A DNA stretch of 64,000 nt from Eutreptiella sp. 'Long Island Sound 2002' (lineage: Eukaryota; Protista; Euglenida): assembly GCA_964036045.1 (NCBI GenBank), contig OZ038378.1, positions 6,324,001-6,388,000 of the forward strand. The letters are read 5' to 3'. Positions within the stretch are counted from its first letter, which is position 1. Every line of letters starts with the position of its first letter. Below are positions 1,348 through 43,199 of the stretch, one piece after another. The notes below the pieces were generated by a model. That model ran no database searches. It worked only from the letters and a program-made list of their open reading frames with translations, and had not been told where the DNA came from. The translations under genes and the position numbers were made by a program.

Positions 1348-3123
1348 ATGAGCTTTGTGGCCAGTGCGGATGACGAGAAGTTCCTCCGTCTCAGCGCCGA
1401 GCACGACCCGCCCCGGCCCTCCACCCCCCCCTCCCCCCTCCCCATCGGCCCCCCGCTGTCGGGGCTGCTGTGGATTGGGGACCTGCTTTGCATACTGCCC
1501 CCCGCCCCCAAGGCGCGCTGCCTGTCGTGCAGCGCGGGGCTCCTCCGCCAGCGGGACTCCGCCTGCTACCTCACGCTGACGGCGGGGGATCACAGTGTAC
1601 AGTCGCCGGTCTCCACCGGGGCCAAGCAGCTGCAGTGGCCCGGCCCCATGGTCCTCTCGGTGGTGCAGGGGGTCGTGGAGCTGGCGATCGAGCTCTGGCA
1701 GAAGCGCCCGCTCTGGCGCCCGCGGCTCCTGGGCAGCGCCCTGCTGCCGCTCGCCGTCTTGGGGCGGGGGCGCGCCGCGCCGCTGCGGCTGCGGCTTGAC
1801 CGTCGCCCGCGGACGGCGCGGCCGCCGCTGCTGGCGCTGCGGCTGTACACCGCCGACTTCGGGGCGGCGCCCACGACGGCCCCGCAGTTCCATCTGCGGT
1901 GCTCGAGCCCCGCGCTGAAGGGGGCGGAGCGGTTCAAGGGCGTGGGGACCCCCTTTGTGTTCCCCTCGGGCTGCCCCCCCCTGGGCCTGTACTACAAAGG
2001 GCGGCCGACGCCGGACATGTGCCGGGGGCAGGCCCACGTGGCGGTGGTCGCCCCGGGCCTGACCGCCGCCGGCGCGGCCGTGACGTTCGTGGCGGTGAAG
2101 ACCGTCCACCTGCTGCACGGCGACCAGAGCAAAGCGGTGCAGAACCGCCTGGACCTGATGTACGCGGCGTGCGAGGGGGACGTCGCGTTCGGCGTGGCCG
2201 TGGGGCCCCCGGCCCCCGCCGAGCGCCTCGCCAGGACCGGCCTGAGCTACAGCGTCGTGACCGGGCGGCTGGAGGCGTTCGACGAGGTCGTGGGGGTGTC
2301 GAACACGAAGCAGCGGTGGAGCCCGGCCCTGCGGCACCGCGAGGCCGTCCGCCTGTCGGTCCGGGCGAACGGGACGCTGAGCGTCGAGCGGTCGGGCGTC
2401 CCCGTCCTGTTCGAGTGGGTGGGCTCCTGGGCCGAGACGGGGCCCCGGCCCCTGCCCCTCCCGCAGACCGCGCAGCTCCACTTTGCCGTGCAGCTGTCGT
2501 CCCCGCGGTACTTCATCGACGTCGAGCACGCCGCCGCGGCGGAGCCCGCGGCGCCGCCGCACGCGGACGGCGCGCCGGGCCCGGGCGCGGGGGCCGCGGT
2601 CCAGGACCGCGGCGAGGCCGGGGGGCCGCTGCCGCAGCCGCAGGCCGGCGGTGCGCCGCAGCCGGACCGGCCCCTGAAGTCTGCCTTGAAGGGCGCGAGC
2701 GGCCGCGTGCCGGAGACGGGGGTCCGCGCGCGCGCGCAGGAGCAGGAGGGCGATGCCCCGCAGCCGGGCCCGAGGACCGCCTCGCCGGACTTGGAAGGGG
2801 CCGCGCCGCAGGCGGGGGCCCGGCCCCGCGTGCATTTCGGCGGATGCTCCCCGGAACCCGCCGCCTCCGAGGCCGCGTCGCCCCCTGAGCCCTGCCCGGA
2901 CCCCCCGCCCCCGCGGCGCCGCCCTCCCCCGTCCATGCGCCGCACCCACGCCGCCTTTCAGAAGGCCCATCCCGCGTCCCCGGCGCCCCTCGCCCCGAAG
3001 GCCAAGGCGGTCCAGTTCCCCGCGGAGCTCCTCTACGCCCACGCCCGGCGCCCCAGCGCCGAGCGCTTGGGGACGTTTGTGACCCTGGGCCCCGGTGCCG
3101 CGGCGGTCAGCCGCACGGGGTAG
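1348..3123 (+). CDS. Protein (~590 aa) with a C2-like domain, a SPRY/concanavalin-like domain and a Pro/Ala-rich tail; may be a large terminal exon rather than a whole gene
   Basis: Long ORF (track 1207-3123, first ATG at 1348) with very strong G/C bias at third codon positions. CYLTLTAG..QSPV..W..MVLSV..VELAIELWQK...LLGSALLPL resembles a C2 domain. VAFGVAVG..GLSYS..GRL..AVRLSVRANGTLSV..LP..LHFAVQL resembles SPRY. Domain calls are by eye. Confidence 0.7.
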   Translation: MSFVASADDEKFLRLSAEHDPPRPSTPPSPLPIGPPLSGLLWIGDLLCILPPAPKARCLSCSAGLLRQRDSACYLTLTAGDHSVQSPVSTGAKQLQWPGPMVLSVVQGVVELAIELWQKRPLWRPRLLGSALLPLAVLGRGRAAPLRLRLDRRPRTARPPLLALRLYTADFGAAPTTAPQFHLRCSSPALKGAERFKGVGTPFVFPSGCPPLGLYYKGRPTPDMCRGQAHVAVVAPGLTAAGAAVTFVAVKTVHLLHGDQSKAVQNRLDLMYAACEGDVAFGVAVGPPAPAERLARTGLSYSVVTGRLEAFDEVVGVSNTKQRWSPALRHREAVRLSVRANGTLSVERSGVPVLFEWVGSWAETGPRPLPLPQTAQLHFAVQLSSPRYFIDVEHAAAAEPAAPPHADGAPGPGAGAAVQDRGEAGGPLPQPQAGGAPQPDRPLKSALKGASGRVPETGVRARAQEQEGDAPQPGPRTASPDLEGAAPQAGARPRVHFGGCSPEPAASEAASPPEPCPDPPPPRRRPPPSMRRTHAAFQKAHPASPAPLAPKAKAVQFPAELLYAHARRPSAERLGTFVTLGPGAAAVSRTG

Positions 3124-4615
3124 CGGGGCCGAACGGGGCGCTGCCCCCCCCGTCCCTTTGGGCAACGTGGCGTGACATCTCACACGACCCCCGCGCCGTG
3201 GGCGGTGGAGGGCCCCCAGGCCGTCCAGACGGACAGCACGCCAACCCCAGGTTTCCCCAGAAACCCCAGTTTGGCCCCACTGCCCCTCTTGTTCACAGTT
3301 GCAGTTGCAGCCGCGCGCTCCCGATGTTCGACTTTTACTGTGCTTTGTCAGGAGGGCAAAGGGACTTGGGCAACCAGCCAACCCCAGCCCATTCCCGGCC
3401 GACAGATCACCCGACAACACGCCGCACACCCCCGCATGCCACACCCCACGGGCTATGATCGAAGGATTATTCCGACGAAGGAGTGCACGCAGGCCCGCGG
3501 TCCCTTCGACGGAAAGAGCGCCCGAGGGGTGCGGTGTGTAGAAGGCGCTCCAAACCTCGCGGTCATTGGAATGACTGCACGCGGCGTGGGCGTGACTGCC
3601 AGGGGGGCAGGGCTGCTGCGATCCCAAGCAGTGGGGCAGGCATTCCACCCTCAACCGCAAAACCGCAACCCCCCTTTTCTACCGTTCGGTGCAGATCTGG
3701 TCGGCGCTGCGGGAGCAGTCGGGCAAAAGAATGGTGATTGTGGAGCATGGAATGGATTGAACGGAGGGAGTCTGGCATGAGGGCAGGGTCATGCCGGTGA
3801 TCTTAAAACCCGGACGTCACGGCCTTTTCCACCGTCACAAATGATGGGCCAGCAACCGCCAGTCACTCGGAAGATGCATGTGCTGCACGGTACCCAACCC
3901 GCCGTGATGGGACACCAGCCCCCCGACACACGCGGGGATGTGGCCCAGCCAGTCCCACATGGAGGGTCTGACCCAAGAGGAAGGGGGGCGTGGGAAGGGG
4001 CCGGATGGCGGCCGCAGGTCACGGTGGCCTGGGGCGTCTGGCCCCCGGCACTGCGGACCTGACATTGCTTTCCCTGACAAGCACCCAACTCCTTTGCAAT
4101 AACGCCCCAGGGCCTTGTAGGCCTCTGCCCTTTGTAACACACACACCCGCACTCACCCGCACCTGCACTTGACGGCCACTGCAGTATTCACACTTCCACA
4201 AGGGCAGGCTTCTGAAGCGGGATCGGCAACTCCCTCGGTTTCCGGACGCACACGTGTGTGTGGAGTCATGAACGGGTTTTGTTGCCTGCAGTTCTGTTCT
4301 TTGCAGGACCATGGGAGAGGCTGTTTACGATGACGGGTGCGGCTGCTGCCCACAGGGGGAGCAGTCAGCCACCAAAGTGCATCATTAACCCTATGCCCAA
4401 AAGGCACGCCTATTTTTGGGTTGTTTGCACATCAACACAGGCGCACGCACACACTGCTCTCATTGTGTTGTGCTGGGCAAATGGCCGGGAAAGGTATGAT
4501 GAGCGCAAGCCAAAAGAAGTTGTTGCGCGAACAGGTCTGTAGAGAGGTGATGGATGATAGCAAATGCCATTGTATGGTTTCCAAAATGCCTGGGCATCAC
4601 ACCCACACACCTACA

Positions 4616-5105
4616 AGGATCCCCGGCTCACTCAACCGGACTAAGCGTAGGTCTCGCAACCGTAAGGTCGTGGGATCGATCCCCGGTGAGGGCATGTCTG
4701 GAGGCGGGCGGTGGCAGCCGTGCGTCAAGGGCATCCTTTCTGTGGAAATCGCCAAATTGAGTAGGCCGTGGAGGCCGCCTCGCTGCCGCGAGCACCACCA
4801 GCTGTGAAAACCCCAATACACACACGACACACGGGGCGACATGGCGATGACGGGCTCGTTACCGTAACTATTACCGTGGAGCTGGCCCGGCGGAAGCCAC
4901 GGAGCTACCACCCCACTTCCAGGGTGGTCCTGGGGCAGCGAGCCAGGTTCTGGCCTAAGTGCATATCGCACCGGTCGAGGGGCAATACAGGGATGCACCC
5001 CTGGCCTGCACCGAAGGCCTGCTATAATGGGGAGCAACCCGACCCGAGGACGCCAGTGTGGCCATACAGGTCCAACCGGGAAGACCTGGTAAAAAACGGT
5101 ACTAC
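4616..5105 (+). mobile_element. tRNA-headed SINE-like element 1 (~490 bp) with 18-bp TSD
   Basis: Exact direct repeat CACACCCACACACCTACA at 4598-4615 and 5106-5123. The head has tRNA-like anticodon/T-arm sequence with a B-box-like GGGATCGATCCCC (~4672-4684). The body shares blocks with the element at 22063 (GCCGTGCGTCAAGGGCATCCT vs GCTGTGCGTCGAAGGCACCT). Confidence 0.75.
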
Positions 5106-5129
5106 CACACCCACACACCTACACACACA

Positions 5130-5189
5130 GGTGTTTTGTTTGGTGCCTGCCAGCTGGTGACACTGCATACCCAACCGAAAGCCAAACAG
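5130..5189 (+). ncRNA. Candidate minimal HDV-like (nested double pseudoknot) self-cleaving ribozyme, copy A
   Basis: Hand-folded. P1 5130-5135/5159-5164 opens with G.U. P2 5137-5144/5181-5188. P3 GCC/GGU 5145-5147/5156-5158. L3 UGCCAGCU. P1.1 GC/GC 5149-5150/5165-5166. J4/2 CGAAA with candidate catalytic C5176. No P4. Confidence 0.75.
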
Positions 5190-5274
5190 GCACGTACATC
5201 GGTAACCTCAACTACACGGGCGGCCCCTGGGCTGGTGCACCCCCTGCCTGGCACGACCTCACGGGTCACACAAA

Positions 5275-7095
5275 ATGTCCGCAATCACGCATGAAATTTT
5301 GGAAGCATTGCAGCGCCCGGAGCTCCTGGAAGCTCTGGCTGCTGCCCTTGCGCCACTACTCAGTGGGCGGAGCTCGCCGAAGCCGAAGCCAACGGCATCT
5401 GTCGCTGCTGCTACTCCAGCTGCAACTACAAGGGAAGAGGAGCTCCTCGGCATTATCCGGGAACTGAGAGGCACTGTCAAAGATTTGCGCGCGGCGCTGC
5501 AAGCGGCAGGAGGTACGCTTACACCCTCGAAAGCACAGGCCAATGCGGCCAAGGATGAAACCCCCTCATACCGGGAGGCGCTACAACGACGAATGAAAAC
5601 CCAAAGCAGGCTTGTCGTGCAGGATGTCCCAGACCTGGGGGAACCACTGCAGCCCACGGCGACTGCGGTGCATGAGATTGAGGGCAAATACGGCTTCACT
5701 GCGGTCCAAGGGCGCCGCATCTACCAGGGAGAGCACAAGACCGCACTCAAATCGCTGCAACAGATAGGAGCAAACAAGCCTGTCAATGATTGGAAAGTCA
5801 CAGAGGCCACGGCGAAGGCCTTCGAACACGTCTTGCTTGTGGGACAGCCGCTGGCGGAAGCGCACGCGATAGCAACACAGGCTCTAATGAAATATGACAG
5901 CATCCAGAGCGTCAGCGCACACGTGCTAGCGACGAATTGCAGACGAGGAGTGGTCAATGTGCCAGGCATTCTGGCAGCGCTTGGCAGCTCACGGGAGTGC
6001 TTACATATCAAGGATTTCATTCTCAGTATCAAGGTCGTTACCAAACGTATGTCTTGGGAAGTCAAGAGAGACCCGGGTGTGGCTGTGATCCCGCCTGAGC
6101 ATTCCATTCTGCTTTGCTGGGAACGACCCAGGGACGGAGTTGAAGGAAAGGACACGGAGCCAGAGGTTCTACCTCAGGACAAAGCCGCAATTCGGATAGT
6201 GTGCTGCTTAGACCCTTCCGTACTGCGCGCGGGACAGGACGGCACCAAAGTCAAGGCATCCCGCTGGGCTGAAAACACGTGCTGGGAGCTGACAGCCCCC
6301 CTACTCCAGCCGGCTCTCACCAGTCCCCCACCCATGCAAGTGGGCAAGAGGGGTAGCAAGTATGAAGTCACGGTGGTGCTACCAGCGCCCATGGCTAAGC
6401 AGGTGCTCTGCAGCAGTGGCAAAATCGTCGGCCTGGAATACAGGTTGTTTATGAGCAAAACCGTCGATGTCGATGACGTGAAGGCCAACATGGTCTGGGT
6501 CAAGCTCCCTCCATCCAACAAGCGCTCCATTTCGAAGCAGTGGCGCAGATTAAGCAAGCAGCCTTGGTTCGCAGGCCTCATGGCAGGGGACAAGGACGAC
6601 AGACTCGGGGTACGAGTATGGGGGGGGGCTGTCTTGCCCGAAACCAGGGAGGAGATCGCAGGACTGTTGGGCATACAACTCACCCCCCCAGTGACACGAG
6701 TGAGAGTGAGAGGCTATGGTATTTCTATGGGCCTTGTCTCAGGGTCGCAGTCTGCGGCCCAAAGGGAGGCTGACCGCGTTTTCGGCGCCAACACTGTCAA
6801 AGTGCAACGATGTCAACACCTGAAACACAGTGGGCTGATCAACCCTGTGTTTGATATGGATATTACGGGAGTCCCCCCAGACTGGGAGGGCTGCACTGCA
6901 CCGGCGAAAGATTCGCGGATGCCTGTCCGTAGGTGGCACCTATGTCTGCGTAAATCCACTGGCCCCTCATACACCCCAGTGGGGAAAAACACGACGCTCC
7001 CTGCGATCCAGGGGTGTGCCTTGCCTGATGATGAAGAAATGGAGGACTCGCCTGCAGGAGCCCCTGCGGCAGAGGAGGATGAGAGCATTCTCTGA
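5275..7095 (+). CDS. LINE ORF1 protein (606 aa), N-terminal predicted helical/coiled-coil region
   Basis: Intact ATG-TGA ORF directly upstream of the APE-RT ORF. Conserved in copy B. No CCHC knuckle recognised. Confidence 0.85.
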   Translation: MSAITHEILEALQRPELLEALAAALAPLLSGRSSPKPKPTASVAAATPAATTREEELLGIIRELRGTVKDLRAALQAAGGTLTPSKAQANAAKDETPSYREALQRRMKTQSRLVVQDVPDLGEPLQPTATAVHEIEGKYGFTAVQGRRIYQGEHKTALKSLQQIGANKPVNDWKVTEATAKAFEHVLLVGQPLAEAHAIATQALMKYDSIQSVSAHVLATNCRRGVVNVPGILAALGSSRECLHIKDFILSIKVVTKRMSWEVKRDPGVAVIPPEHSILLCWERPRDGVEGKDTEPEVLPQDKAAIRIVCCLDPSVLRAGQDGTKVKASRWAENTCWELTAPLLQPALTSPPPMQVGKRGSKYEVTVVLPAPMAKQVLCSSGKIVGLEYRLFMSKTVDVDDVKANMVWVKLPPSNKRSISKQWRRLSKQPWFAGLMAGDKDDRLGVRVWGGAVLPETREEIAGLLGIQLTPPVTRVRVRGYGISMGLVSGSQSAAQREADRVFGANTVKVQRCQHLKHSGLINPVFDMDITGVPPDWEGCTAPAKDSRMPVRRWHLCLRKSTGPSYTPVGKNTTLPAIQGCALPDDEEMEDSPAGAPAAEEDESIL

Positions 7096-7125
7096 ACCCC
7101 CCCCCCCCCTGGAAGATGGCACTGA

Positions 7126-10100
7126 GTCACAGGTCCTCTAAAATTCGTCCACACAAACGTTACCTCTTTGCGCGTTCATCACGAGGACGTATTCAATTTT
7201 CAGGCAGATGTGATTGGAATGGAAGAAACCCGGCTCACTGAGGCTGGGCAACGCTGCATGAGGGCAATTGCAAAAGATTGGGGCTGGGAATGCCACTGGG
7301 GAAAACCCCTGGGCTCCCCAACGGGGGGCATCTGGGGAGCTCCCCAAGGAGGGGTGGGACTTTTGTTCAGGAAGGGCTGGAGTGTCCGCAAGGTTGAGCC
7401 AGATCCAGACGACCCGATTGCCTGCAGGCTGTGGCATTCGGGGCGCTGGCTACACACACGGGCAGGAATCGGTGCAGGGCACTGTGTGCTGAACATATGT
7501 GTAGCCTATGGCATACCAGGCAACGAATCTTTGAACCAGGAGTTCTGGGAGCAGGTGGTCTGCTATATGAGCAAACTAGGCAATGCCGGATGCATCCTGC
7601 TAACGGACGCAAATTTCAATTTCGACCTGCTGCACAAAGTTCCTGCCGCACTCCTGACGGCGCTGGCAGACGGCTGGCTGGTGGATGCCGACCGCACTTT
7701 TAGCGTTCTCCATGGCACACCATGTGCATGTGGCTTCACGACAGCAGGCAAACCCCCCAACCGCATTGACGGCCTCCTGGTCACCCCAGCGCAAGCAGGC
7801 ACGTTGACTGATGTCACAGCGCTGAAGTCTCATTCCCTCCCTGGGCATGCTCCAGTGTGCTTCACTTTCTCGCTTGACGCCCCAATGCAGAAAGTTGTTA
7901 AAATGAAGAAACTGCCTCCTTTCTCCCCCCCCCCCAGATCAGCTGAGGACACTCAGAAAATCTGTGACTCGCTGCTCCGGCCACACAAGGCAGGTTGGAA
8001 TGCCCTGCTGCAACAAGGGAATGTCAATGACATTTGGAACAGGTGGACCTGGCTGGCCGAGGAAGTAGGCATGGCGCTCACATGCACGCATCTTACACTG
8101 GACACCCCCAGCCCCACACTCCCATTTGCACCCAAGAGTGCCCCACGGGGACGTGGCACGGAGCGAATGTTGCAGGACACTACGCTAGCTCCGACAGGCC
8201 TGGCGCCGAACGGCGGCCCACGCACGCGCATACTTTCCAAAATCACGGGGACCTTGGGAGCCCTTCGTTCGGTCATCCAGTGGCAACGTGCCCAGCTAGG
8301 CATCAGGGGCAAACGAGTCCCGGCATCCGCCAAACACAAAGCCAGCCAGGTTTTCAGGCCAGGGGTGGTGCCCAGACAGGTGGAACTATCGTGGCAGGCC
8401 GCGTGCCGCCGCATGCGCAAAACGGCGCTGGCCTTTCGTGAGGACCTGCTGCTTCATGAATTTGTGGCCAGTGCCCCTGACCCCTCCCTCCCACTCATAC
8501 GCCCCCTGCCAACGCTGGTAGACTGCATGTCGCTGTATGACAGCCTGTGCGCACTGGGGAAGAGATATGCCCGATATGAAGAGCGCACGCGCATTGATAA
8601 ATGGAAATCCAAAATGGACCAGGCCTGGCTGGACAGGCCAAAGGAGGTTTATCAGTGGATACAGAACGAGTACCAACCTCCTCTGGTTATGCTCCTGGAC
8701 CCAGACACAAGCCAACCAACGGCGAACATCCCCCGCATGGATGAAATTCTTCATGCCTCTTGGGACCAGGTTATGCGAAAATATGCAGACACCCCAGAGC
8801 CAGACGTGCACGCTTTTGCACAGAAGTATGATAAGTTTCTGATAAAGGGAGTGCAGATGCAGTCCACCCCTATCACAGGGTCTCGGCTCGCGCAACGCCT
8901 TAGAAAGATGGGTGTTCACACAGCCACCGGCCTGGATGGCTGGTGTGTTTCGGACCTACTACTGCTGCCCACCTGTCTGCTGGACATGCTGTCAGAAATT
9001 CTGTTTCTAGTTGAGGCAACAGGAACCTGGCCCAGGGTCCTGGCGAGGGGATACGTCTCGCTGATCCCGAAAGGGGAAGGGATGATGCCGATGCAGCAAC
9101 GCCCACTGTCCGTACTGTCCCAGATCTATAGGGTCTGGGCAGGGATCAGGTTAGAAGAATGCATGGTGTGGCAGGAACTGTGGATCCACCCGCACGCTTA
9201 CGGCTTTCGCAAGAAGCGCGGCGCCACTGATGCGGCCGCCTTTATCTCCATGCTCATTGAGCTACACAAACTGATGAAAGCAGTTCTGCATGGTTTTGGA
9301 TTAGACTACATAAAATGCTTCGATTTAATCCCACAATCCATTGTACTGCATATTGCACTGACGCAGGGGATGGATTTGGGCACACACAGGGCCCTCTCTG
9401 GCATGTATCGCACTCTCACAAGGTGCTTTAAAATAATGGGGTGTTTGGCCAGTTTTTTCGATGCCACCAATGGCATCCTCCAGGGCTGCCCATTGAGTGT
9501 GATACTCATCAATCTCCTGACCTCGGTCTGGAAGCGGGTGCTGGATGCACAGCAACAGGGCATCAAAGTCGCAGTACAGGCCCTCCCCCCCAGCGATCAG
9601 CCAGCGCAGGCCCTGCACTTCATCCTAACTGCCCTTGGGTATGCGGATGACACTTATGGGTTTGCAGCCGGAAGCAATACCCTCACCCCCCTGCTAGACT
9701 GCACCACTGACTGGCTTGAGGACACGGGTCAAGGGGTGAACGCGAAGAAATCTGTCGGTTTTTCGTCAGACGCCCGTCACCCAGTGAAGGCAGCATTACA
9801 GGGGGTGCCCTTCCCTATCTCTTCTGAGTTTAAGTCCCTGGGCGCGGGGGTCCGCACCACGGACGCGACTTGTTCGGGACCGCTCATCAAGAAAAGGATT
9901 TCCAGAGCCTGCAGCCTCCTGGATAGGGTGCATGGCGCTCAGGGCAATTTTGAAAGGAGATGCGACATCATCTCCACAATGATCACGGCCACTGGCCTGC
10001 ACGCAGCAGAAATAGTGCCACTTCAGCCCAGAGACCTCCTGCCCTTCGAGACTAAGGTCATGCAGACCATTTGGGGACGGTCACGGCCCGGTAGGGCCAA

Positions 10101-12236
10101 AGAAATTTTTTTCACCTTGCTGTGCAAAGGGCACCGGATTGCACCCACCCTGGTACTTAAGTATCATCGCATCCTGTGGCTATCCCAGCTGTGTCGCACC
10201 AGGGGTGCTGGACAGATCACAGCCCAGGCCATTTGGGAGATGACATCATTTCACAAAGGCTCCGGCCCATACGGCCGAGCCATGTCCACAGCACAGGAGT
10301 GTGGCTGGGTCGCTACGCAGGGATGGTGGGGATGGAAAGTGCCTGGGCGCAAGGAACCCCTCCTCCTATACGGGGATAAAAACACTATCAAGCACGAGGT
10401 GCGTGAACAGCTGCGCTCGCAAATGCTGGACAGCCTGGTTCAGAGGCGTCCCCGCCTGTTCGCGGGGGCTCATTACACCACATGCCGGCGCCTGGTCCAG
10501 CCCAGCATAGCGTCATTTGCCACAGAGCTACAGCGCTCTCTCCTGCGGGGCATCCTATCAGGAGCAACCTGGACAGCCCTCCGGGCCTATCAACGTGGCA
10601 TGCGAGCCACATCCACGTGCCCGTACTGCGGCAATGCTCCGGAAAACGAGGAGCACATTTTTTGGCAGTGTTCAGCCTGGAGCACGGTGCGGGACACCCA
10701 CCTGCCGGGCATCAGGACGGCGGCAGCACAGATCACAGGCCTTCCCCTCATGGACCAGTGGCCCTCATGTTTACGACTTTGTGGGTTAGCCCCAGAGTTA
10801 GACACAGACAGCGTCAAGTCAGGGACAGCGCTCGCATTCATGACAGCTCTGCACAATATGTTAGTAGCCGTCTTGCAGGCCCGCAAGTTACGAGACACAC
10901 AATCCCCCATGCTTTTCATGGGGTCGAGCCTCTCACAGCAGCTTCGGCAGTACCCGTACCACCAACTGGTGGGACCCCTCCCCAGACCGGAAGACAAAGG
11001 GTTACTTCTTTTGCGTACCCCTAAGAAGGTGGAATGGCAGTGGGAAATGCCCTTTTTGGCGGACCTGCTGCGCTGGCTGAGGGAACTGCACTGGGCCCCT
11101 GAACCAGGCACAGTGACGTTCTTGGAACTTGCACTGGACTTTGAGGAATTTGCGCAACGCACCCTCCCACACGCTCCACAGGCAAAATTTAAGGGCACCA
11201 CCCTTTCGCTGCAAGAGAGAGGCCGGGTCTTACGACTGGCAATGGCAAATGCGCAGCGCCTGACACCAAAGGCCATTTGCATCCGGCGCGTGTGGTCACA
11301 CGCTGCAGCTCTTTAGTTCCTTTGGGGGGGCCGGCACTCTGCGGCCTGAACTGCCGCCCTTATTTCACTTGCCGCAGTGCCATGAACATGCACGTTCAGC
11401 AGTCAGCGGCATACTGTGAGCGCACATGGGCCACCAAGGTTGGTCTCAACAGGATACACAAACTGCGCCCGCACACACACAGGCCACGCAGAACAGCGCA
11501 GGAAGTGGAGGAGCATCGGCTACAGCGTGCACTCCAGGGGAATCTGCAGTTGGGGCTGGCCCCGCCCTCGGAGCAGACCACTTTTGCCAAAGGGGGGGGG
11601 GGCTGCTCCTCCTTTGCAGCTGATTTCTTCCCTGTGATAGGGGATGGGAAGCTCCCACAGCGCCCCTACACCGGGACACGCAGGCGCGCAAACACACACA
11701 GGGGGCCACCACCGGCGCCGCCGGCTGATCCGTCAAAGTGTGCCCAGCACTCTGCTGACGCATGCACGACCTGCAAGAGATTTCGGCGCACAGCTGAAGC
11801 GTGCTGTGCGCTGGGACATCACGCTGATAACCACATAGCACGCAGACCGCAACTGCAACTGTGCCCACTGCATGGCCTGCCACCGTGCCCGAGGTGCACA
11901 CTCAAGCAAAGGGGAGTGCGCCACTGCTGTCAGCGGGGACACCATAAAGTGTGCACCCCAGTGCCTGCGCGCCGGAAACGCCCACTTGCTGCACATGCAC
12001 AACTGCCCAACAAACGACCACGCCTGCAAGGGCCTGCACGTATCTCAACGGGTCTGCTGAGGTCCCCACACCAACCCCCCACCCCTCCAGCCCCCAAGCG
12101 CAGGAGGCCGAAAACACCCCCCCCTCCGTCCCCATCTGCCCCAGTTCCACGGGGGCTGGAGGAGACCGTGGCCGAGGATGTCGCCCGCCCGCTTTTCGTG
12201 ACGAGGCACGGGAGAGCAAACACTCTGGATACTTAG
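7126..12236 (+). pseudogene. LINE ORF2 (APE endonuclease - RT - CCHC-type finger - Cys/His tail), one frameshift near 11270
   Basis: APE motifs: NVTSL, GMEETRL, TDANF, NRIDGLL, GHAPV. RT motifs: RPLSVLSQIYRVW, YGFRK, LDYIKCFD, GILQGCPLS, YADD. Finger: CPYC..ENEEHIFWQC. A 1-nt deletion versus copy B (CCTGACACC vs CCTGGTCACC) moves the C-terminus into the track ORF 11277-12236. Confidence 0.92.
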
Positions 12237-12819
12237 CCAGTAAAATACAGAGGTTCTGATTCCGCAGAAGGGAGGGAAACAACGTCACAAAGAGGCCTCA
12301 GCAGACCTGAGCCAAATGGGGCGTCCAGCCCAACGCTGCACAAGGATCCACCTCTAAAAGTACAGATCACACACCTACACACACAAGGGGGGGGGGGCTG
12401 AGGGCACCAGCATCCAAGCGCCGCAGGACCCCCCCCCCCCCAAGCTGCCGTGGCGGTTCGACACCTGACCAATTGCGGCCCGAGCTGCCTTCACTGTCGA
12501 GGAGGCCCGCAGGATACTCTAAATTAGGGACAGATGATGCCCCCTCCTCGTGGACACATAAGCGGTGCTGCCTCCCGGAGTCGCGGTTGGAACGGATGGC
12601 CGTACAAGAGCCCAGTGCACCTGACCACCTCCTTTTCGAAGAGGTTCTAGCCCAGCCGAGGGTCAAAGTGCCGGCGGCCCCATTGAAGCTGGGAGACCAT
12701 GTCCCCAGAACCAGTCGACCAGCCCCGAGTAATGGGCCTCCACACTGTGCACCCTAACCCAGAGACCCACACTGGCTTTCCTCTCTAATACAGTGCCCCC
12801 CCCCCCCCACACACACACA

Positions 12820-13320
12820 TGGTCCGAGGATGAACAGAAGGCGATGGGGTGGGTGGGTCAGACGGTGCTGTTCAAGGGACCACAACGGGCATCCACCAGC
12901 GACGCCCGCCAAGCACCCGCAATGCACCACTGGCTGGCCAGCCACATGATGCTGGGATTCACACCGGCGGCCAAATGAAGACGACAAGGGGACCCATCAA
13001 AGCAAGCCACCAAGAGGCATGAGGTGGGAGGGAAACGAATCGCAGTGCCACCCTGCTGAAACTGCACTGAACAGCCAATCAAGCACTGCTGGACAACTGT
13101 AGCGTTGGGGGATGCGTTGGGACAGAGGTCACATAACCATTCTCCAAGGGAGGTTCTCAAACATGAGAGGCCAGCTTCACTGGAACCATGCTTTTCTGAT
13201 GCTTATGCTGCCATACTTCAAATGACTCGAGATGCTATACAGTGACTAGGCCCACTAACCAATGCTGATGCAACTCCTAAAGACGGGTTTCCTTTCCACA
13301 CACAACCGCATGCACGCAAA
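12820..13320 (+). pseudogene. Degenerate 5' part of an older related LINE ORF2 (host of copy B)
   Basis: After removing copy B and one TSD, this region reads in frame into the RNase H ORF at 20572 (..DGFPFHTQPHARKHTHTHTQRLPDFESAKL..). There is only weak similarity to the ORF2 finger region, and several stops are present. Confidence 0.45.
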
Positions 13321-13340
13321 CACACACACACACACACACA

Positions 13341-13400
13341 GGTGTTTTGTTTGGTGCCTGCCAGCTGGTGACACTGCATACCCAACCGAAAGCCAAACAG
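13341..13400 (+). ncRNA. Candidate minimal HDV-like ribozyme, copy B
   Basis: First 62 nt are identical to 5130-5191, whereas the UTR immediately downstream diverges. Candidate catalytic C at 13387. Confidence 0.75.
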
Positions 13401-13497
13401 GCGCGATCCTCGGTGACTCTGTCATCACACGGGCTGCTTCTGCCTCCCCCTGGGCTGGTGAAAACCCTGCTTGGCACGACCCCACGGGTCATACAAA

Positions 13498-15292
13498 ATG
13501 TCGGGACTTACCCATGAAATTTTGGAAGCGCTACGTAAGCCAGAGCTACTGGAAGCTCTGGCCGCAGCCATCGCACCACTTCTCAGTGGGAAGAAGGATC
13601 TACCGCCGCCGGCGAAAACGACTACTGCACGGGAAGAGGAACTCCTTGGCGTCATCCGGGAGCTACGTGGCACGGTCCGCGAGTTGCGCGCAACACTACA
13701 AGCGGCAGGGGGTAAATCGGTGCCCCCAAAGGAGCAGACCGTGGTGGACGAGCAACAGTCCCCCTATCGCGCGGCCCTCACTCGGAGGATGAAAACACAG
13801 AGCCGTCTTGTCGTACAGGATGTCCCAGACCTGGGAGAACCACTGCAGCCAACAGCCGCTGCGGTGCATGAAATTGAGGGCAAACACGGCTTTACTGCGG
13901 TCCAAGGACGCCGCATTTACCAGGGAGAGCACAAGACTGCACTCAAGTCTTTGCAACAGATAGGAGCAAACAAGCCTGTCCATGATTGGAAGGTCACAGA
14001 GGCCACCGCAAAGGCCTTCGAGCACGTTTTGCTTGTGGGGCAACCGCTGGCGGAAGCGCACGCAATAGCAGCACAGGCCTTAACAAAATATGACAGCGTC
14101 CAGAGCGTCAGCGCACACGTGCTAGCGACAAACTGCAGACGGGGAGTGGTCAATGTGCCAGGCATACTGGCAGCGCTTGGCAGTTCACGAGAATGCTTGC
14201 ATGTCAAGGATTTCGTTCTCAGCATCAAGGTCGTTACCAAACGTATGTCTTGGGAAGTCAAGAGAGACCCGGATGTGACTGTGATCCCACCTGAGCACTC
14301 CATCCTGCTTTGCTGGGAGCGACCCAAAGACGGCGTCGAAGAACAGGACACGGAGCCAGAAGTGCTACCTCAGGACAAGGCTGCCATTCGGATAGTGTGC
14401 TGCCTAGACCCTTCCGCACTGCGCGCGGGACAGGACGGCACCAAAGTCAAGGCATCCCGCTGGGCTGAAAACACGTGCTGGGAGCTGACGGCCCCCCTAC
14501 TCCAGCCGGCACTCACCAGTCCCCCACCCATGCAAGTGGGCAAGAGGGGCAGCAAGTATGAAGTCACGGTGGTGCTACCAGCGCCCATGGCTAAGCAGGT
14601 GCTCTGCAGCAGTGGCAAAGTCGTCGGCCTGGAATGCAGGTTGTTTATGAGCAAAACCATCGATGTCGATGACGTGAAGGCCAACATGGTCTGGGTCAAG
14701 CTCCCTCCATCCAACAAGCGCTCCATTTCGGAGCAGTGGCGTAGATTAAGCAAGCAGCCTTGGTTCGCAGGCCTCATGGCAGGGGACAAGGACGACAGAC
14801 TCGGGGTACGAGTATGGGGGGGGGCTGTCTTGCCCGAAACCAGGGAGGAAATCGCAGGACTGTTGGGCATACAACTCACCCCCCCCCGTGACACGAGTGA
14901 GAGTGAGAGGCTATGGTATTTCTATGGGCCTTGTCTCAGGGTCGCAGTCTGCGGCCCAAAGGGAGGCTGACCGCGTTTTCGGCGCTAACACTGTCAAAGT
15001 GCGACGATGTCAACACCTGAAGCACAGTGGGCTGATCAACCCTGTGTTTGATATGGATATTACGGGAGTCCCCCCAGACTGGGAGGGCTGCACTGCACCG
15101 GCGAAGGATTCGCGGATGCCTCTCCGTAGGTGGCACCTATGTCTGCGTAAATCCACTGGTCCCTCATACACCCCGGTGGGGAAAAACACGACGCTCCCTG
15201 CGGTCCAGGGGTGTGTCTTGCCTGATGATGAAGAAATGGAGGACTCGCCTGCAGGAGCCCCCGCGGCAGAGGAGGATGAGAGCATTCTCTGA
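13498..15292 (+). pseudogene. LINE copy B ORF1, +1 frameshift in a poly-C run at ~14879-14887
   Basis: Track ORFs 13471-14970 and 14888-15292 together match copy A ORF1. The run is C9 here versus C7A in copy A, so it may be a homopolymer sequencing error. Confidence 0.85.
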
Positions 15293-15323
15293 ACCCCCCC
15301 CCCCCTCTGGAAGATGGCACTGA

Positions 15324-18300
15324 GTTACAGGTCCTCTAAAATTCGTTCAGACAAACGTTACCTCTTTGCGCGTCCATCACGAGGACGTATTCAATTTTCA
15401 GGCAGATGTGATTGGAATGGAAGAAACCCGGCTCACTGAGGCTGGGCAACGCTGCATGAGGGCAATTGCAAAAGAATGGGGCTGGGAATGCCACTGGGGA
15501 AAACCCGTGGGCTCCCCAACGGGGGGCATCTGGGGAGCTCCCCAAGGAGGGGTGGGACTTTTGTTCAGGAAGGGCTGGAGTGTCCGCAAGGTTGAACCAG
15601 ATCCAGACGACCCAATTGCCTGCAGGCTGTGGCATTCAGGGCGCTGGCTACACACACGGGCAGGAATCGGTGCAGGGCACTGTGTGCTGAACATATGTGT
15701 GGCCTATGGCATCCCAGGCAACGAATCTTTGAACCAGGAGTTCTGGGAGCAGGTGGTCTGCTATATGAGCAAACTAGGCAATGCTGGATGCATCCGGCTA
15801 ACGGACGCAAATTTCAATTTCGACCTGCTGCACAAAGTACCTGCCGCACTCCTGACGGCGCTGGCAGACGGCTGGCTGGTGGATGCCGACCGCACTTTTA
15901 GCGTTCTCCATGGCACACCATGTGCATGTGGCTTCACGACGGCAGGCAAACCCCCCAACCGCATTGACGGCCTCCTGGTCACCCCAGCGCAAGCGGGCAC
16001 GTTGACTGATGTCACAGCGCTGAAGTCTCATTCCCTCCCTGGGCATGCTCCAGTGTGCTTCACTTTCTCGCTTGACGTCCCAATGCAGAAAGTTGTTAAA
16101 ATGAAGAAACTGCCTCCTTTCTCCCCCCCCCCCCCAGATCGGCTGAGGACACTCAGAAAATATGTGACTCGCTGCTCCGGCCACACAAGGCTGATTGGAA
16201 TGCCCTGCTGCAACAGGGAGATGTCAATGACATTTGGGACAGGTGGACCCGGCTGGCCGAGGAAGTAGGCATGGCACTCACATGCACGCATCTTACACTG
16301 GACACCCCCAACCCCACACTCCCATTTGCACCCAAGAGTGCCCCACGGGGGCGTGGCACGGAGCGAATGGTGCGGGACACTACGCTAGCACCGACAGGCC
16401 TGGCGCCCAACGGCGGCCCGCGCACGCGCATACTTTCCAAAATCACACGGACCCTGGGAGCCCTTCGCTCGGTCATCCAGTGGCAACGTGCCCAGCTGGG
16501 CATCAGGGGCAAACGAGTCCCGGCATCCGCCAAACGCAAAGCCAGCCAGGTTTTCAGGCCAGGGGTGGTGCCCAGACAGGTGGAACTATCGTGGCAGGCC
16601 GCGTGCCGCCGCATGCGCAAAACGGCGCTGGCCTTTCGTGAGGACCTGCTGCTTCATGAATTTGTGGCCAGTGCCCCTGACCCCTCCCTCCCACTCATAC
16701 GCCCCCTGCCAACGCTGGTAGACTGCATGTCGCTGTATGACAGCCTATGCGCACTAGGGAAGAGATATGCCCGCTATGAAGAGCGCACGCGCATTGATAA
16801 ATGGAAATCCAAAATGGACCAGGCCTGGCTGGACAGGCCAAAGGAGGTTTATCAGTGGATACAGAACGAGTACCAACCTCCTCTGGTTATGCTCCTGGAC
16901 CCAGACACAAGCCAACCAACGGCGAACATCCCCCGCATGGATGAAATTCTTCATGCCTCTTGGGACCAGGTTATGCGAAAATATGCAGACACCCCAGAGC
17001 CAGACGTGCACGCTTTTGCACAGAAGTATGATAAGTTTCTGATAAAGGGAGTGCAGATGCAGTCCACCCCTATCACAGGGTCCCGGCTCGCGAAACGCCT
17101 TAGAAAGATGGGTGTTCACACAGCCACCGGCCTGGATGGCTGGTGTGTTTCGGACCTTTTACTGCTGCCCACTCGTCTGCTGGACATGCTGTCAGAAATT
17201 CTGTTTCTAGTTGAGGCAACAGGAACCTGGCCCAGGGTCTTGGCGAGGGGATACGTCTCGCTGATCCCGAAAGGGGAAGGGATGATGCCGATGCAGCAGC
17301 GCCCACTGTCCGTACTGTCCCAGATCTATAGGGTCTGGGCAGGGATCAGTTTAGAGGAGTGCATGGTGTGGCAGGAACTGTGGATCCACCCGCACGCTTA
17401 CGGTTTTCGCAAGAAGCGCGGCGCCACTGATGCGGCCGCCTTTATCTCCATGCTCATTGAGCTACACAAACTGATGAAAACAGTTTTGCACGGTTTTGGA
17501 TTAGACTACATAAAATGCTTTGATTTGATCCCACAGTCCATTGTACTGCATATTGCACTGACACAGGGGATGGATTTGGGCACACACAGGGCCCTTTCTG
17601 GCATGTATCGCACCCTCACAAGGTGCTTTAAAATAATGGGCTGTTTGGCCAGTTTTTTAGATGCCACCAATGGCATCCTCCAGGGCTGCCCATTGAGTGT
17701 GATACTCATCAACCTCCTGACCTCGGTCTGGAAACAGGGCATCAAAGTCGCGGTACAGGCCCTTCCCCCCAGCGATCAGCCAGCGCAGGCCCTGCAATTT
17801 ATCCTAACTGCCCTTGGGTATGCGGATGACACTTATGGGTTTGCAGCCGGAAGCAATACCCTCACCCCCCTGCTAGACTGCACCACTGACTGGCTTGAGG
17901 ACACGGGTCAAGGGGTGAACGCGAAGAAATCTGTCGGCTTTTTGTCTGACGCCCGTCACCCAGTGAAGGCAGCACTACAGGGGGTGCCCTTCCCTATCTC
18001 TTCTGAGTTTAAGTCCCTGGGCGCGGGGGTCCGCACCACGGACGCGACTTGTTCGGGACCGCTCATCAAGAAAAGGATTTCCAGAGCCTGCAGCCTCCTG
18101 GATAGGGTGCATGGTGCTCAGGGCAATTTTGAAAGGAGATGCGACATCATCTCCACAATGATCACGGCCACTGGCCTGCACGCAGCAGAAATAGTGCCAC
18201 TTCAGCCCAAAGACCTCCTGCCCTTCGAGACTAAGGTCATGCAGACCATTTGGGGACGGTCACGGCCCGGCAGGGCCAAAGAAATCTTTTTCACCTTGCT

Positions 18301-20416
18301 GTGCAAAGGGCACCGGATTGCACCTACCTTGGTACTTAAGTATCATCGCATCTTGTGGTTATCCCAGCTGTGTCGCACCAGGGGTGCTGGACAGATCACA
18401 GCCCAAGCCATTTGGGAGATGACAACATTTCACAAAGGCTCCGGCCCATACGGCCGAGCCATGTCCACAGCACAGGAGTGTGGCTGGGTCGCTACGCAGG
18501 GATGGTGGGGATGGAAAGTGCCTGGGCGCAAGGAACCCCTCCTCCTATACGGGGATAAAAACACTATCAAGCACGAGGTGCGTGAACAGCTGCGCTCGCA
18601 AATGCTGGACAGCCTGGTTCAGAGGCGTCCCCGCCTTTTCGCGGGGGCTCATTACACCACATGCCGGCGCCTGGTCCAGCCCAGCATAGCGTCATTTGCC
18701 ACAGAGTTACAGCGCTCTATCCTGCGGGGCATCCTATCAGGAGCAACCTGGAAAGCCCTCCGGGCCTATCAACGTGGCATGAGAGCCACATCCACGTGCC
18801 CGTACTGTGGCAATGCTCCGGAAAACGAGGAGCACATTTTTTGGCAGTGTTCAGCCTGGAGTACGGTGCGGGACACCCACCTGCCGGGCATCAGGACGGC
18901 GGCAGCACAGATCACAGGCCTTCCCCTCATGGACCAGTGGCCCCCATGTTTACGACTTTGTGGATTAGCCCCAGAGTTAGACACAGACAGCGTCAAGTCA
19001 GGGACAGCGCTCGCATTCATGACAGCTCTGCACAATATGTTGGTAGCCGTCTTGCAGGCCCGCAAGTTACGAGACACACAATCCCCCATGCTTTTCATGG
19101 GGTCGAGCCTCTCACAGCAGCTTAGGCAATACCCGTACCACCAACTGGTGGGACCCCTCCCCAGACCGGAAGACAAAGGGTTACTTCTTTTGCGTACCCC
19201 TAAGAAGGTGGAATGGCAGTGGGAAATGCCCTTTTTGGCGGACCTGCTATGCTGGCTGAGGGAACTGCACTGGGCCCCTGAACCAGGCACAGTGACGTTC
19301 TTGGAACTCGCATCGGACTTTGAGGAATTTGCGCAACGCACCCTCCCACACGCTCCACAGGCAAAATTTAAGGGCACCACCCTTTCACTGCAAGAGAGAG
19401 GCCGGGTCTTACGACTGGCAATGGCAAATGCGCAGCTCCTGGTCACCAAAGGCCATTTGCATCCAGCGTGTGTGGTCACACGCTGCAGCTCTTTAGTTCC
19501 TTTGGGGGGGCCGGCACTCTGCGGCCTGAACTGCCGCCCCTATTTCACCTGCCGCAGGGCCATGAACATGCACGTTCAGCAGTTAGCGGCATACTGTGAG
19601 CGCACGTGGGCCAACAAGGTTGGTCTCAACAGAATACACAAACTGCGCCCGTACACACATAGGCCACGCAGAACAGCGCAGGAAGTGGAGGAGCATCGAC
19701 TACAGCGTGCACTCCAGGGGAATTTGCAGTTGGGGCTGGCTCCGTCCTCGGAGCAGACCACTTTTGCCAAAGGGGGGGGGGGCTGCTCCTCCTTTGCAGC
19801 TGACTTTTTCCCTGTGATAGGGGATGGGAAGCTCCCACAGCGCCCCTACACCGGGACACGCAGGCGCGCAAACACACACAGGGGGCCACCACCAGCGCCA
19901 CCGGCTGATCCGTCAAAGTGTGCCCAGCACTCTGCTGACGCATGCACGACCTGCAAGAGACTTCGGCGCACAGCTGAAGCATGCTGTGTGCTGGGACATC
20001 ACGCTGATAACCACATAGCACGCAGACCGCAACTGCAACTGTGCCCACTGCATGGCCTGCCACCGTGCCCGAGGTGCACACTCAAGCAAAGGGGAGTGCG
20101 CCACTGCTGTCAGCGGGGACACCATAAAGTGTGCACCCCAGTGCCTGCGCGCCGGAAGCGCCCACTTGCTGCACATGCACAACTGCCCCACAAACGACCA
20201 CGCCTGCAAGGGCCTGCACGTATCTCTACGGGTCTGCTGAGGTCCCCACACCAACCCCCCACCCCTCCAGCCCCCAAACGCAGGAGGCCGAAAACACCCC
20301 CCCCTCCGTCCCCACCAGCCCCAGTTCCACGGGGGCTGGAGGAGACCGTGGCCGAGGATGTCGCCCGCCCGCTTTTCGTGACGAGGCACGGGAGAGCAAA
20401 CACTCTGGATACCTAG
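15324..20416 (+). pseudogene. LINE copy B ORF2 (APE-RT), frameshift in poly-C at ~16123-16135 and a 21-nt in-frame deletion at ~17733
   Basis: Track ORFs 15366-16268 and 16271-20416. The run is C13 versus C11 in copy A. The RT reads WKQG versus WKRVLDAQQQG. The C-terminus is intact. Confidence 0.9.
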
Positions 20417-20567
20417 CCAGCAAAATACAGAGGTTCTGATTCCGCAGAAGGGAGGGAAACAACGTCACAAAGAGGCCTCAGCAGACCTGAGCCAAATGAG
20501 GCGTCCAGCCCAACGCTGCACAAGGATCCACCTCTAAAAGTACAGATCACACACACACACACACACA

Positions 20568-21750
20568 AAGGTTGCCAGATTTTGAGAGTGCGAAGCTAGC
20601 GTCCAACATGCGTGTATGCGTAGATGGATCAACAGAAGGATCAACGGAAGGGGGGGGAGCAAGATATGGAGTGTTCTTCCCCTTTGGGGAATACCCCAAT
20701 GTCAGCCACCTGGTGGTAAGCCCACAAACAAACAACAGGGCAGAAGTGTCGGTGATCAGGGCAGTCCTACAAACAGTGGACAGGGCAAAAGATGTGTGCA
20801 TGTACAGTGACTCGCAATGGCACGTGGATATATTGCACAATATCAAAATGTACAAAAGACAGAGGTGGCACACTAAGAGCAAGCAGCCAATCAGACATCA
20901 CGACATTTGGGAGGATATATATACCATGTTGTAGGCTAGGACATGGGGCTAAAAAGTAGTGCATGTGTACGCGCACAATTCTGTGCCACAAAATGAGGAG
21001 GCAGACAGATTGGCTGAGAGAGTTAAATTGTCAATTGTACACTAGGTCAGAAGACGTAGTAGGTCACAAGATAGCAGTTGGAGGGGCCCAAGCAAAAGAC
21101 AACGAGGGGCAGGGGCATCAAGAGGCATACAGCAATTCATGTGTTAGATAGCAGCGAAGACGAGGAGGTGCAATCAGTTTAAAGACAAAGGAAGCGCAAG
21201 TTGCAAGGGCCATCCGAACTGCTTGATCCAGAGCCGGGTTAGATACTTCTGACCCCCGTGTGAATATTCAACATCAATGTAATTCAAAGCACTACCGTTG
21301 GGCAGGAACAACCCCATGGTGGGGCAATTTGCAATTGGCGAACACAACACAAAGAGGCCCATAGTTTATGGTGGACGGGCCGCAGAAAGTGCTCGTGCCA
21401 GCTCCGCCGGCCATGGTCTTCGCACCCCTGCTGGGGCAGTGCAAAGCCACGAGGCTAGAGACAAAGCGCACAAACCATGCTCCACGTGCACCCTAACACG
21501 AAGGGGCACCACACACTGTTGCGCCCAAGGGCACCCGGGCCACCCCTAGGACACCTACACACCCTGCCTGCCACCCCTAGGAGGGCTCCTAACCAACGAG
21601 CGGTGTGTTGGCAGCACCTGTACATATGGAGATCCAGAGCTGATTGGCAGCCCCCTGCATGGCCGGACACAGAACTGATGGTTTGTAGTAGTGGTAGGAG
21701 AGTAGGATTGTTGAACCTCGCAGTTTGAGCATGATTGAATTAATTCCCTT
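20568..21750 (+). pseudogene. 3' part of an older related LINE with an RNase H domain
   Basis: RNase H motifs: VCVDGS, GARYGVFF, QTNNRAEVS, YSDSQW, WHTKSKQPIRHHDIWEDI, then a stop and VVHVYAH. Downstream WLREL (~21010) and CSTCTLTRRGTTHCCAQGH (21478-21534) match the C-terminus of LINE A/B ORF2. Ends at a CA run (~21753). Confidence 0.75.
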
Positions 21751-21770
21751 GGCACACACACACACGCACA

Positions 21771-21841
21771 CCTCGGCAGACCTGAGCCAAATGGGGCGTC
21801 CAGCCCAACGCTGCACAAGGATCCACCTCTAAAAGTACAGA

Positions 21842-21842
<1 letters not shown>
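21771..21842 (+). mobile_element. 5'-truncated 72-bp 3' tail of the LINE A/B family
   Basis: CCTCGGCAGACCTGAGCC...CTCTAAAAGTACAGAT is near-identical to the last 72 nt of both LINEs. It lies between CA runs (21753-21770 and (CA)15 at 21843-21872). Confidence 0.9.
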
Positions 21843-21876
<34 letters not shown>

Positions 21877-21963
21877 TCCACGGGTATCAAAGAACTGCCA
21901 CACAGCAGACAAGAGAATTGAGGGAGACAAAAATCATCCCCTCGGTTGTCAATTGGCTTGCAT

Positions 21964-21976
21964 GCGCGCGCGCGCG

Positions 21977-22062
<86 letters not shown>
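21964..22062 (+). repeat. (GC)n(CA)n alternating purine-pyrimidine microsatellite
   Basis: Read directly from the sequence: a short GC/CG run followed by more than 80 bp of CA with one interruption. Confidence 0.95.
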
Positions 22063-22064
<2 letters not shown>

Positions 22065-22399
22065 GGGGATCCCCGGTGTGGTCGACTTGGCTAACTGTCA
22101 GTCTCCTGACCCGAGGGTTGTGGGATCGATTCCCAGTAGTGGCGGACCGGCGGTCGATGGCTGTCCGCGACCGCTGTGCGTCGAAGGCACCTACTGGTGA
22201 AGTTGTTGCAACTGATGAGGCCATTGGACTCAGGGACTCAGCTGGGCTTCCAGCTCCCGTCACAAGGTACCCCAGCCAGACAGGGGAACATCATCTGATC
22301 CAGGTTTGGATTCAACCCTGGATTTGGGCTGCATCGCCCTCAAGCGCACAAGGATTGCGCTTGCAAGCAACAGGTTGCATGTGCACCCTGGATACCCTC
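22063..22399 (+). mobile_element. tRNA-headed SINE-like element 2 (~340 bp)
   Basis: A-box-like TGGTCGACTTGG (~22079) and B-box-like GGGATCGATTCCC (~22122). Shares the GGATCCCCGG start and body blocks with 4616-5105. Bounded by CA-rich sequence on both sides, but no exact TSD. Confidence 0.65.
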
Positions 22400-43099: not shown

Positions 43100-43171
43100 A
43101 CACACACACACACACACACATACACACACACACACACATACACACACACACACACTCACACACACACACAC
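43100..43171 (+). repeat. (CA)n microsatellite, interrupted
   Basis: Read directly from the sequence. Confidence 0.9.
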
Positions 43172-43199
43172 AATAGACCATATGACGAGTCCTTCCTTG

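Follow-up and report, generated by a model that had tools for sequence, protein, structure and literature searches.

A euglenid LINE family probably integrating into (CA)n microsatellites in one orientation, with an 18-bp target-site duplication

The DNA analysed here (the window) is a stretch of 64,000 nucleotides from the euglenid Eutreptiella sp. 'Long Island Sound 2002' (contig OZ038378.1, positions 6,324,001 to 6,388,000). It holds two full-length copies, A and B, of a 7.2-kb long interspersed nuclear element (LINE), together with a 72-nt fragment of its 3' end. A reading made earlier from the letters of the window (the sequence-only reading) had described copy A as bracketed by an interrupted CA repeat that includes a CCT on both sides, copy B as lying between two runs of (CA)10, the 72-bp 3' tail as lying in CA, and the element as ending without poly(A). 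Each of these descriptions is borne out at the positions given (Table 1). The 18-mer CACACACCTACACACACA occurs exactly twice in the window, each time directly abutting copy A; the 72-nt fragment has an imperfect CA tract before it and (CA)15 after it. The LINE copies lack poly(A) at their 3' ends, where ...AAAAGTACAGAT is joined directly to CA, and a repeat search of the window found neither long terminal repeats nor terminal inverted repeats for the LINE. Copy A is 99.4% identical to a copy with intact open reading frames (ORFs), the sole difference in length being a 1-nt deletion at 11263 that shifts the frame of ORF2. Copy B, of an older subfamily, carries nine indels, one of which, an insertion of 2 nt at 16123, disrupts ORF2.

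The junctions of the family were then counted by pattern searches, with printed flanks, of the 2.28-Gb genome assembly. The 16-mer at the 3' terminus of the LINE (CTCTAAAAGTACAGAT) occurs 743 times, while the reversed control pattern has no match genome-wide. The next base is C in 740 of the 743 occurrences; CACACAC follows in 707 and a perfect (CA)9 in 589. Among the 100 matches listed, 79 are followed by at least 18 nt of perfect CA, 21 by imperfect CA and none by unrelated sequence, so that a tabulation of genomic 3' flanks, the check named by the sequence-only reading, gives CA or imperfect CA in all 100. All 30 of the 3' flanks that were fetched contain at least (CA)7, and 28 contain at least 18 nt of perfect CA. 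The orientation is constant, the CA strand being the sense strand of the LINE. Perfect CA tracts of at least seven units make up just 284 of the 64,000 bases of the window (<0.5%), and several of these are the LINE's own flanks; given how rare such tracts are in the window, a C after 740 of the 743 3' ends excludes chance.

The 5' ends give the same picture. About 140 full-length copies are present genome-wide, against the ∼740 that retain the exact 3' terminal 16-mer. The 100 listed matches to the first 16 nt comprise ∼10 unrelated T/G-rich sequences and ∼90 genuine LINE 5' ends, and 83 of the latter have (CA)n directly before GGTG. The remainder consist of two preceded by GA, one with seven extra bases, two with a spliced leader after the CA, one with a point change and one that is non-CA; thus ∼89 of the 90 genuine full-length 5' ends among the matches listed lie in CA. 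Every full-length copy for which both junctions were fetched abuts CA, with a spliced leader between CA and LINE in one case (L046). The sampled 5'-truncated copies, whose breakpoints are spread over many positions of the LINE from 84 to 7018, also all abut CA wherever the left flank could be read (that of L005 is an assembly gap). The claim of the sequence-only reading that the family inserts in (CA)n is therefore upheld by near-unanimity at both junctions. New copies are often found in CA that was duplicated by older ones: ∼10 of the listed 5' ends come after the 3' end of another LINE copy and its CA, which explains the head-to-tail arrays seen at L017, L020, L022, L023, L034 and L039. In the window, such an array is formed by copy B, a fragment of a second retroelement family and the 72-nt fragment.

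Table 1. Features of the LINE family and of its neighbours; positions are those of the window unless a contig is given
Feature	Position	Strand	Remarks
Left 18-bp target-site duplication of copy A (CACACACCTACACACACA)	5112-5129		exact string match
LINE copy A, full length, 7238 nt	5130-12367	+	starts GGTGTTTT..., ends ...AAAAGTACAGAT
First 62 nt of LINE	5130-5191	+	candidate HDV-like self-cleaving ribozyme, pairings hand-read
ORF1, 606 aa	5275-7095	+	copy A, no recognisable domain
ORF2, first frame	7126-11313	+	APE-like endonuclease ~7138-7860, RVT_1 9064-9819, CCHC zf-RVT ~10550-10680
ORF2, C-terminal part, shifted frame	11193-12233	+	conserved domain and tandem Cys/His motif ~11739-11945
Right 18-bp target-site duplication of copy A (CACACACCTACACACACA)	12368-12385		exact string match
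(CA)10 at 5' junction of copy B	13321-13340
LINE copy B, full length, older subfamily	13341-20547	+	95.3% identity to young copies
(CA)10 at 3' junction of copy B	20548-20567
Imperfect CA tract at 5' junction of 72-nt fragment	21753-21770
72-nt 5'-truncated copy of LINE 3' end	21771-21842	+	98% identity to LINE tail
(CA)15 at 3' junction of 72-nt fragment	21843-21872
Spliced-leader-headed copies L051 (1485-1520), L052, L053	C5:63264596, C11:18470818, C10:51090090		flanks unrelated
Left 18-bp duplication of SINE (CACACCCACACACCTACA)	4598-4615		exact string only at 4598 and 5106 in window
SINE-like element, 490 bp, non-coding, tRNA-like head	4616-5105	+	inside same imperfect CA tract as copy A
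Right 18-bp duplication of SINE (CACACCCACACACCTACA)	5106-5123		overlaps left duplication of copy A
5'-truncated fragment of second retroelement family	20570-21752	+	RNase H domain 20620-20931, Pfam RNase_H E 7e-16

The length of the duplication follows from tracts that are not perfectly regular. Three independent 18-bp duplications carry interruptions peculiar to their locus: that of copy A, that of a LINE copy on another contig (3' end at C2:179365101, 5' end at C2:179372341) and that of a short interspersed nuclear element (SINE) directly upstream of copy A. In copy A the CCT interruption fixes the register of the 18 nt. The C2 copy has CACACACATAGACACACA on both sides, with unique sequence to the left and a tract that goes on at the right, so that only a length of 18 fits. 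At short bounded microsatellites about 18 nt are found on each side of the LINE, as in the copy at C3:187948782/187954528, which has (CA)9 on both, and in copy B with its two runs of (CA)10. The shortest CA tracts flanking the LINE, on either side, measure 15-18 nt, and tracts of this size thus serve as targets. Perfect-CA runs have a median length of 19 nt to the left of the LINE and 21 nt to its right, the 3' tract being not systematically longer than the 5' tract. Because the interruptions are copied on both sides at independent loci, the flanking CA is the duplicated target, and because 3' tracts go down to 15-18 nt, nothing is added beyond the duplication. The evidence supports a duplicated target rather than an added tail, and the argument of the sequence-only reading on this point, made from copy A, is reinforced by the C2 copy and the SINE as independent loci.

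The coding content supports the assignment of the family to the non-LTR (non-long-terminal-repeat) retrotransposons with an apurinic/apyrimidinic endonuclease (APE), and suggests recent activity. Both ORFs are open in three of 11 full-length copies examined (L040, L043 and L045), the intact ORF2 having 1,703 codons. ORF1 gave no Pfam match at E values up to 1, and its translation does not contain the motif CX2CX4HX4C. The reverse transcriptase (RT) of ORF2 matches Pfam RVT_1 with E values of 4e-13 to 4e-14. A profile of the family matches human L1 ORF2p with an E value of 4.5e-49 in separate endonuclease (EN) and RT stretches; it aligns to residues 37-255 of the human L1 EN (i-E 3e-4), with the QET, GDxN and RID motifs and the catalytic His, and also matches the L1 EN structure 1VYB and ExoIII (exonuclease III). 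The RTs of R2 elements match at 1e-41 to 1e-37 over the RT alone, their restriction-like endonuclease (RLE) not being covered; since they score nearly as well as L1 over this region, the L1 match gives no clade assignment. Together with the APE-like N-terminal domain and the varied 5' truncation, these matches agree with the LINE identity given in the sequence-only reading.

Other parts of ORF2 are less familiar. Its C-terminal ∼500 residues comprise a conserved core and a tandem Cys/His motif and have no Pfam match; AlphaFold2, run on the C-terminal 509 aa with a nine-row alignment, returned a mean pLDDT (predicted local distance difference test) of 47, with confidence confined to the Cys/His motif and one short helical core. 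Pfam and profile comparisons gave no signal in ORF2 for RNase H, OTU or an RLE, and an identity as a Dualen/RandI- or R2-like dual-endonuclease element was rejected on this ground. Distant relatives at 26% identity (P0007, P0011) have the order OTU-APE-RT-RNase H. Word-index protein searches returned no named relatives, and the protein clusters matched in the ESM Atlas are generic RVT/APE only. The open frame of ORF2 has no ATG near its start (L040:2425-2459; window 7096-7126), and its first Met comes only within the endonuclease domain. In some intact copies, though not in L043, a gap of 30 nt separates ORF1 from ORF2 and the two share a frame. Given the lack of an early ATG and the variable frame between the ORFs, translation of ORF2 must start unconventionally.

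Taken together, the junctions point, with high probability, to a family that enters (CA)n/(TG)n microsatellites by target-primed reverse transcription and with one fixed orientation. Base-exact junctions, fixed orientation and the 18-bp duplication can be seen directly in the copies: CACACAC begins immediately after the 3' end (...GTACAGAT, without poly(A)), and ...ACACA stands immediately before the 5' end, be it full-length (GGTG...) or truncated. In the route that we propose, the ORF2 endonuclease would nick the TG strand just 3' of ...GTGTGTG, and the freed TG 3' end would pair with CA at the 3' end of an RNA transcribed past the LINE into its donor locus, which would make cDNA synthesis start exactly at ...GAU. 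The CA strand would then be cut 18 nt downstream, again after ...ACACA. As both proposed cuts fall within the repeat, each nick site would need ∼7 nt of repeat, and the central four positions would tolerate interruptions. Indeed, the first interruption lies at flank positions 8-10 in nine of 20 independent imperfect flanks (binomial P ∼0.003), and 95% of copies have no interruption at positions 1-7. Interruptions at other loci, 8-11 nt from the 5' junction, are in agreement with the pattern of the 3' flanks. This distribution is suggestive of two repeat half-sites adjoining the two nicks.

Several observations weigh against this account. The nicks, the RNA read-through and the half-sites are all drawn from the junctions only. 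For a single ORF2 sequence the Pfam match to Exo_endo_phos is weak (E 0.015-0.04), and the usual SDH motif reads PGH, with Gly in place of Asp; the same domain scores above the curated cut-off in the relatives P0007-P0009. The 18-nt pairs are imperfect in L043 (one T/C difference), in L036 and in the 72-nt fragment (a G interruption on the left only), which is compatible with the account if microsatellite mutation or irregular 5' joining is allowed. In L031 the two flanks have (CA)10 AA (CA)17-18 in common, a pattern longer than an 18-bp duplication alone would explain. Finally, one full-length copy, at C4:34160770/34167857, is the only one listed with something other than CA on its 5' side: the sequence there ends ..AAAATACA, and (CA)7 and then TACATG come after the 3' end. 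It may most simply be read as a 5-bp duplication (ATACA) with a 13-nt CA tail, so that the LINE RNA may carry a short CA tail; the copy may be an off-target insertion primed by such a tail, and it hints at pairing between CA read through on the RNA and the nicked TG strand. An empty paralogue of this site was searched for in the genome and none was found.

These exceptions also bear on the alternative in which the 3' (CA)n is a templated or slippage-made tail of the LINE, as in CR1, L2 and I, and the 5' CA reflects microhomology or a loose preference. That the LINE has no poly(A) while CA follows every copy listed would fit such a tail, as would the C4 copy, with its 3' CA run and no 5' CA repeat, and the 3' tracts longer than 18 nt in L031 and some other pairs. 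Yet a tail would not place the locus-specific interruptions (CCT, TAG, CCC..CCT) on both sides at exactly 18 nt, nor would it leave 3' tracts of merely 15-18 nt, which contain nothing beyond the duplication, or left and right runs of like length. Moreover, 16-20 nt of CA adjoin even those 5'-truncated copies whose breakpoints are free of CA microhomology. We therefore regard this alternative as improbable; the exceptional copies are compatible with microsatellite mutation and irregular 5' joining, and also with an RNA carrying read-through CA, itself part of the favoured model. Two patterns had been named in the sequence-only reading as adverse to it: a majority of non-CA flanks, which was not seen, and a CA tail without a 5' repeat, of which the C4 copy is one possible instance.

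An insertion process without sequence preference, followed by survival mainly in CA-rich, low-recombination or gene-poor regions, has been proposed for Drosophila Waldo-A/B. The genome is rich in CA tracts, several of them unoccupied in the window (43101-43172, 51412-51479), and the copies are clustered in arrays, as passive accumulation would have it. However, the junctions are exact to the base (GAT|CAC, 740/743), which effectively refutes it; the CA strand is the sense strand in every case, CA already flanks very young copies with 99-100% identical tails, and many targets are isolated tracts of 18-20 nt in unique sequence. Passive accumulation is accordingly very hard to credit. Least credible of all is that the window copies and their CA flanks stem from segmental duplication or assembly error and not from independent insertions: flanks are shared at L005/L006 and at C3:111381655/111389711, but A and B differ in subfamily (95.4% identity), indels and flanks, and dozens of loci with unrelated unique flanks already refute the idea for the family as a whole.

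Insertion into CA as a duplicated target, which we thus prefer, leaves a particular sequence at the 5' boundary. In three full-length copies, belonging to two subfamilies and amounting to ∼2% of full-length copies, a complete 26-nt spliced leader stands between the target CA and the LINE (Table 1). It is identical to the spliced leader of Euglena gracilis (PMC6242988). GTGTTTT, which starts one base into the LINE, follows the leader directly, and this places the splice after an AG made up of the last A of the target and the first G of the LINE. The presence of such copies in the genome implies that read-through transcripts are sometimes trans-spliced at the boundary and then copied back to DNA.

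The first 62 nt of the LINE are identical in both subfamilies, and the 5' untranslated region diverges right after them. This segment can be folded as a candidate hepatitis delta virus (HDV)-like ribozyme that lacks P4, with nested P1, P2, P3 and P1.1. Read by hand, the pairings are 1-6/30-35 for P1, with a G1-U35 wobble at the cleavage site, 8-15/52-59 for P2 and 16-18/27-29 for P3; C47 is the candidate catalytic base. In an Rfam scan of 4400-22200 at E values up to 1, neither a ribozyme nor any other family was matched within the elements, and no covariation supporting the putative fold was found. The sole match in that interval, to mir-297, was rejected as false, being caused by the CA repeat.

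It is conceivable, though we think it unlikely, that target choice and RNA processing are co-adapted to the way in which euglenids make mRNA, through the AG acceptor at the boundary, the candidate 62-nt ribozyme and the proposed 18-nt double nick via two 7-nt CA half-sites. Read-through transcripts from any CA tract could then yield spliced-leader-capped, translatable LINE mRNA, and an HDV-like ribozyme at the 5' boundary could free an uncapped template for transposition. The three leader-headed copies show that such splicing occurs, not that selection favours it. If co-adaptation were true, it would amount to a strategy for a promoter-less LINE that is without description elsewhere.

The LINE is not the only element at the locus that is associated with CA. 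The SINE upstream of copy A and the LINE entered the same site, a 24-nt imperfect tract between GGGCAT and AGGGGG before insertion, of which the SINE duplicated bases 1-18 and copy A bases 7-24. No tRNA was called by ARAGORN in the tRNA-like head of the SINE. At many loci the 3' end of the SINE (..GGTAAAAAYGGT..) is found again with a CA tract after it; the possibility that it shares the 3' tail of the LINE was rejected, the best local alignment score being only 24. The second retroelement family, represented by the fragment that follows copy B, also ends against CA in the window, and its 3' end recurs beside CA tracts in L005, L007 and L051. Tails of further kinds, with ..AGTACAGAT or ..AGCACAGAG at their end, are found at L023, L034, L039 and C13:27376235. 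The second-family fragment and these tails suggest that there are several related CA-targeting families. A further long CA tract (21977-22062), like the two unoccupied tracts given above, has no insertion of this LINE family; targets are therefore far from saturated. Elsewhere in the window, the G+C content reaches 72% over 2001-4000, an array of GGCGGT-NCACACAA-like 16-nt units with a 114-nt tandem pair occupies 25465-25863, and a long tandem array with a period that is a multiple of 5 nt, overlapped by open frames of 343-470 codons, extends over 61700-62700.

The family brings to light a large part of the LINE and SINE content of the 2.3-Gb genome that has until now gone without annotation, and explains part of the interruption and clustering of its CA microsatellites. 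The published annotation of a Euglena genome assigns 1.5% to LINEs and 33% to unknown sequence (PMC11252322). A full-text literature search, with Repbase outside its reach, turned up neither an account of non-LTR elements in Euglena nor one of CA targeting there. Since there are hundreds of near-identical young copies, with a fixed 18-bp duplication, central interruptions and copies with open ORFs, endonuclease specificity and second-strand cleavage are directly testable in this system.

Microsatellite-specific LINEs comprise a handful of insect and fish families, whose targeting mechanism is poorly understood (PMC3812793). The same source describes MinoAg1 of Anopheles gambiae, a member of the R1 clade, as an (AC)n-specific APE LINE, citing Kojima and Fujiwara 2003, and gives as targets (ACAY)n for Waldo, (TC)n and (TTC)n for Kibi and Koshi of fish (Tx1 group) and (TAA)n for Dong (PMC3812793). 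The comparison with Waldo, Mino, Kibi and Koshi made in the sequence-only reading is correct as an analogy in target habit (PMC3812793). The fixed orientation and base-exact junctions found here place the family in the functional class of Mino, Waldo, Kibi, Koshi and Dong. Like MinoAg1, it is an APE LINE with sequence-specific insertion into the same dinucleotide microsatellite and without a poly(A) tail. It differs from MinoAg1 and Waldo, which are insect elements, in its euglenid protist host and in an ORF2 of ∼1,700 aa with a long C-terminal region matching no named family. The ORF1 of R1-clade elements carries C-terminal CCHC zinc knuckles; unlike that of MinoAg1 and Waldo, the present ORF1 has none. 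No close sequence relationship to any named protein is detectable, and CA specificity most likely evolved independently of MinoAg1 and Waldo. With Kibi, Koshi and Dong the family shares the habit of a microsatellite-specific non-LTR element with repeat on both flanks; those elements have other repeat units and belong to different clades, and Dong is of the restriction-like-endonuclease group, whereas the present family has an N-terminal APE-like domain.

The working model is the same as that for TRAS1 and SART1 of Bombyx mori and for R1Bm, here drawn from the junctions only. TRAS1 and SART1 are R1-clade LINEs specific to telomeric repeats, in which target sequence read through on the RNA pairs with the nicked strand and sets the start of reverse transcription. 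Anzai et al., in 2001 and 2005, reportedly found that the APE endonuclease cuts both strands of the tandem repeat at defined positions. In contrast to these elements and R1Bm, the present family has a dinucleotide repeat as its target and duplicates a fixed 18 bp. Among solved structures, human L1 ORF2p (PDB 8uw3, 8sxt, 9k6g) is the best match to the family profile, one that spans the endonuclease as well as the RT, thumb-side regions included. Like human L1, the family is a two-ORF APE LINE with frequent 5' truncation; unlike it, the family has neither the poly(A) or A-rich tail that is a feature of the L1 clade, nor the loose TTTT/A target and variable duplications of L1. The present LINE is thus a protist example of a habit that is already known from the LINEs of insects and fish, and the habit itself is not new.

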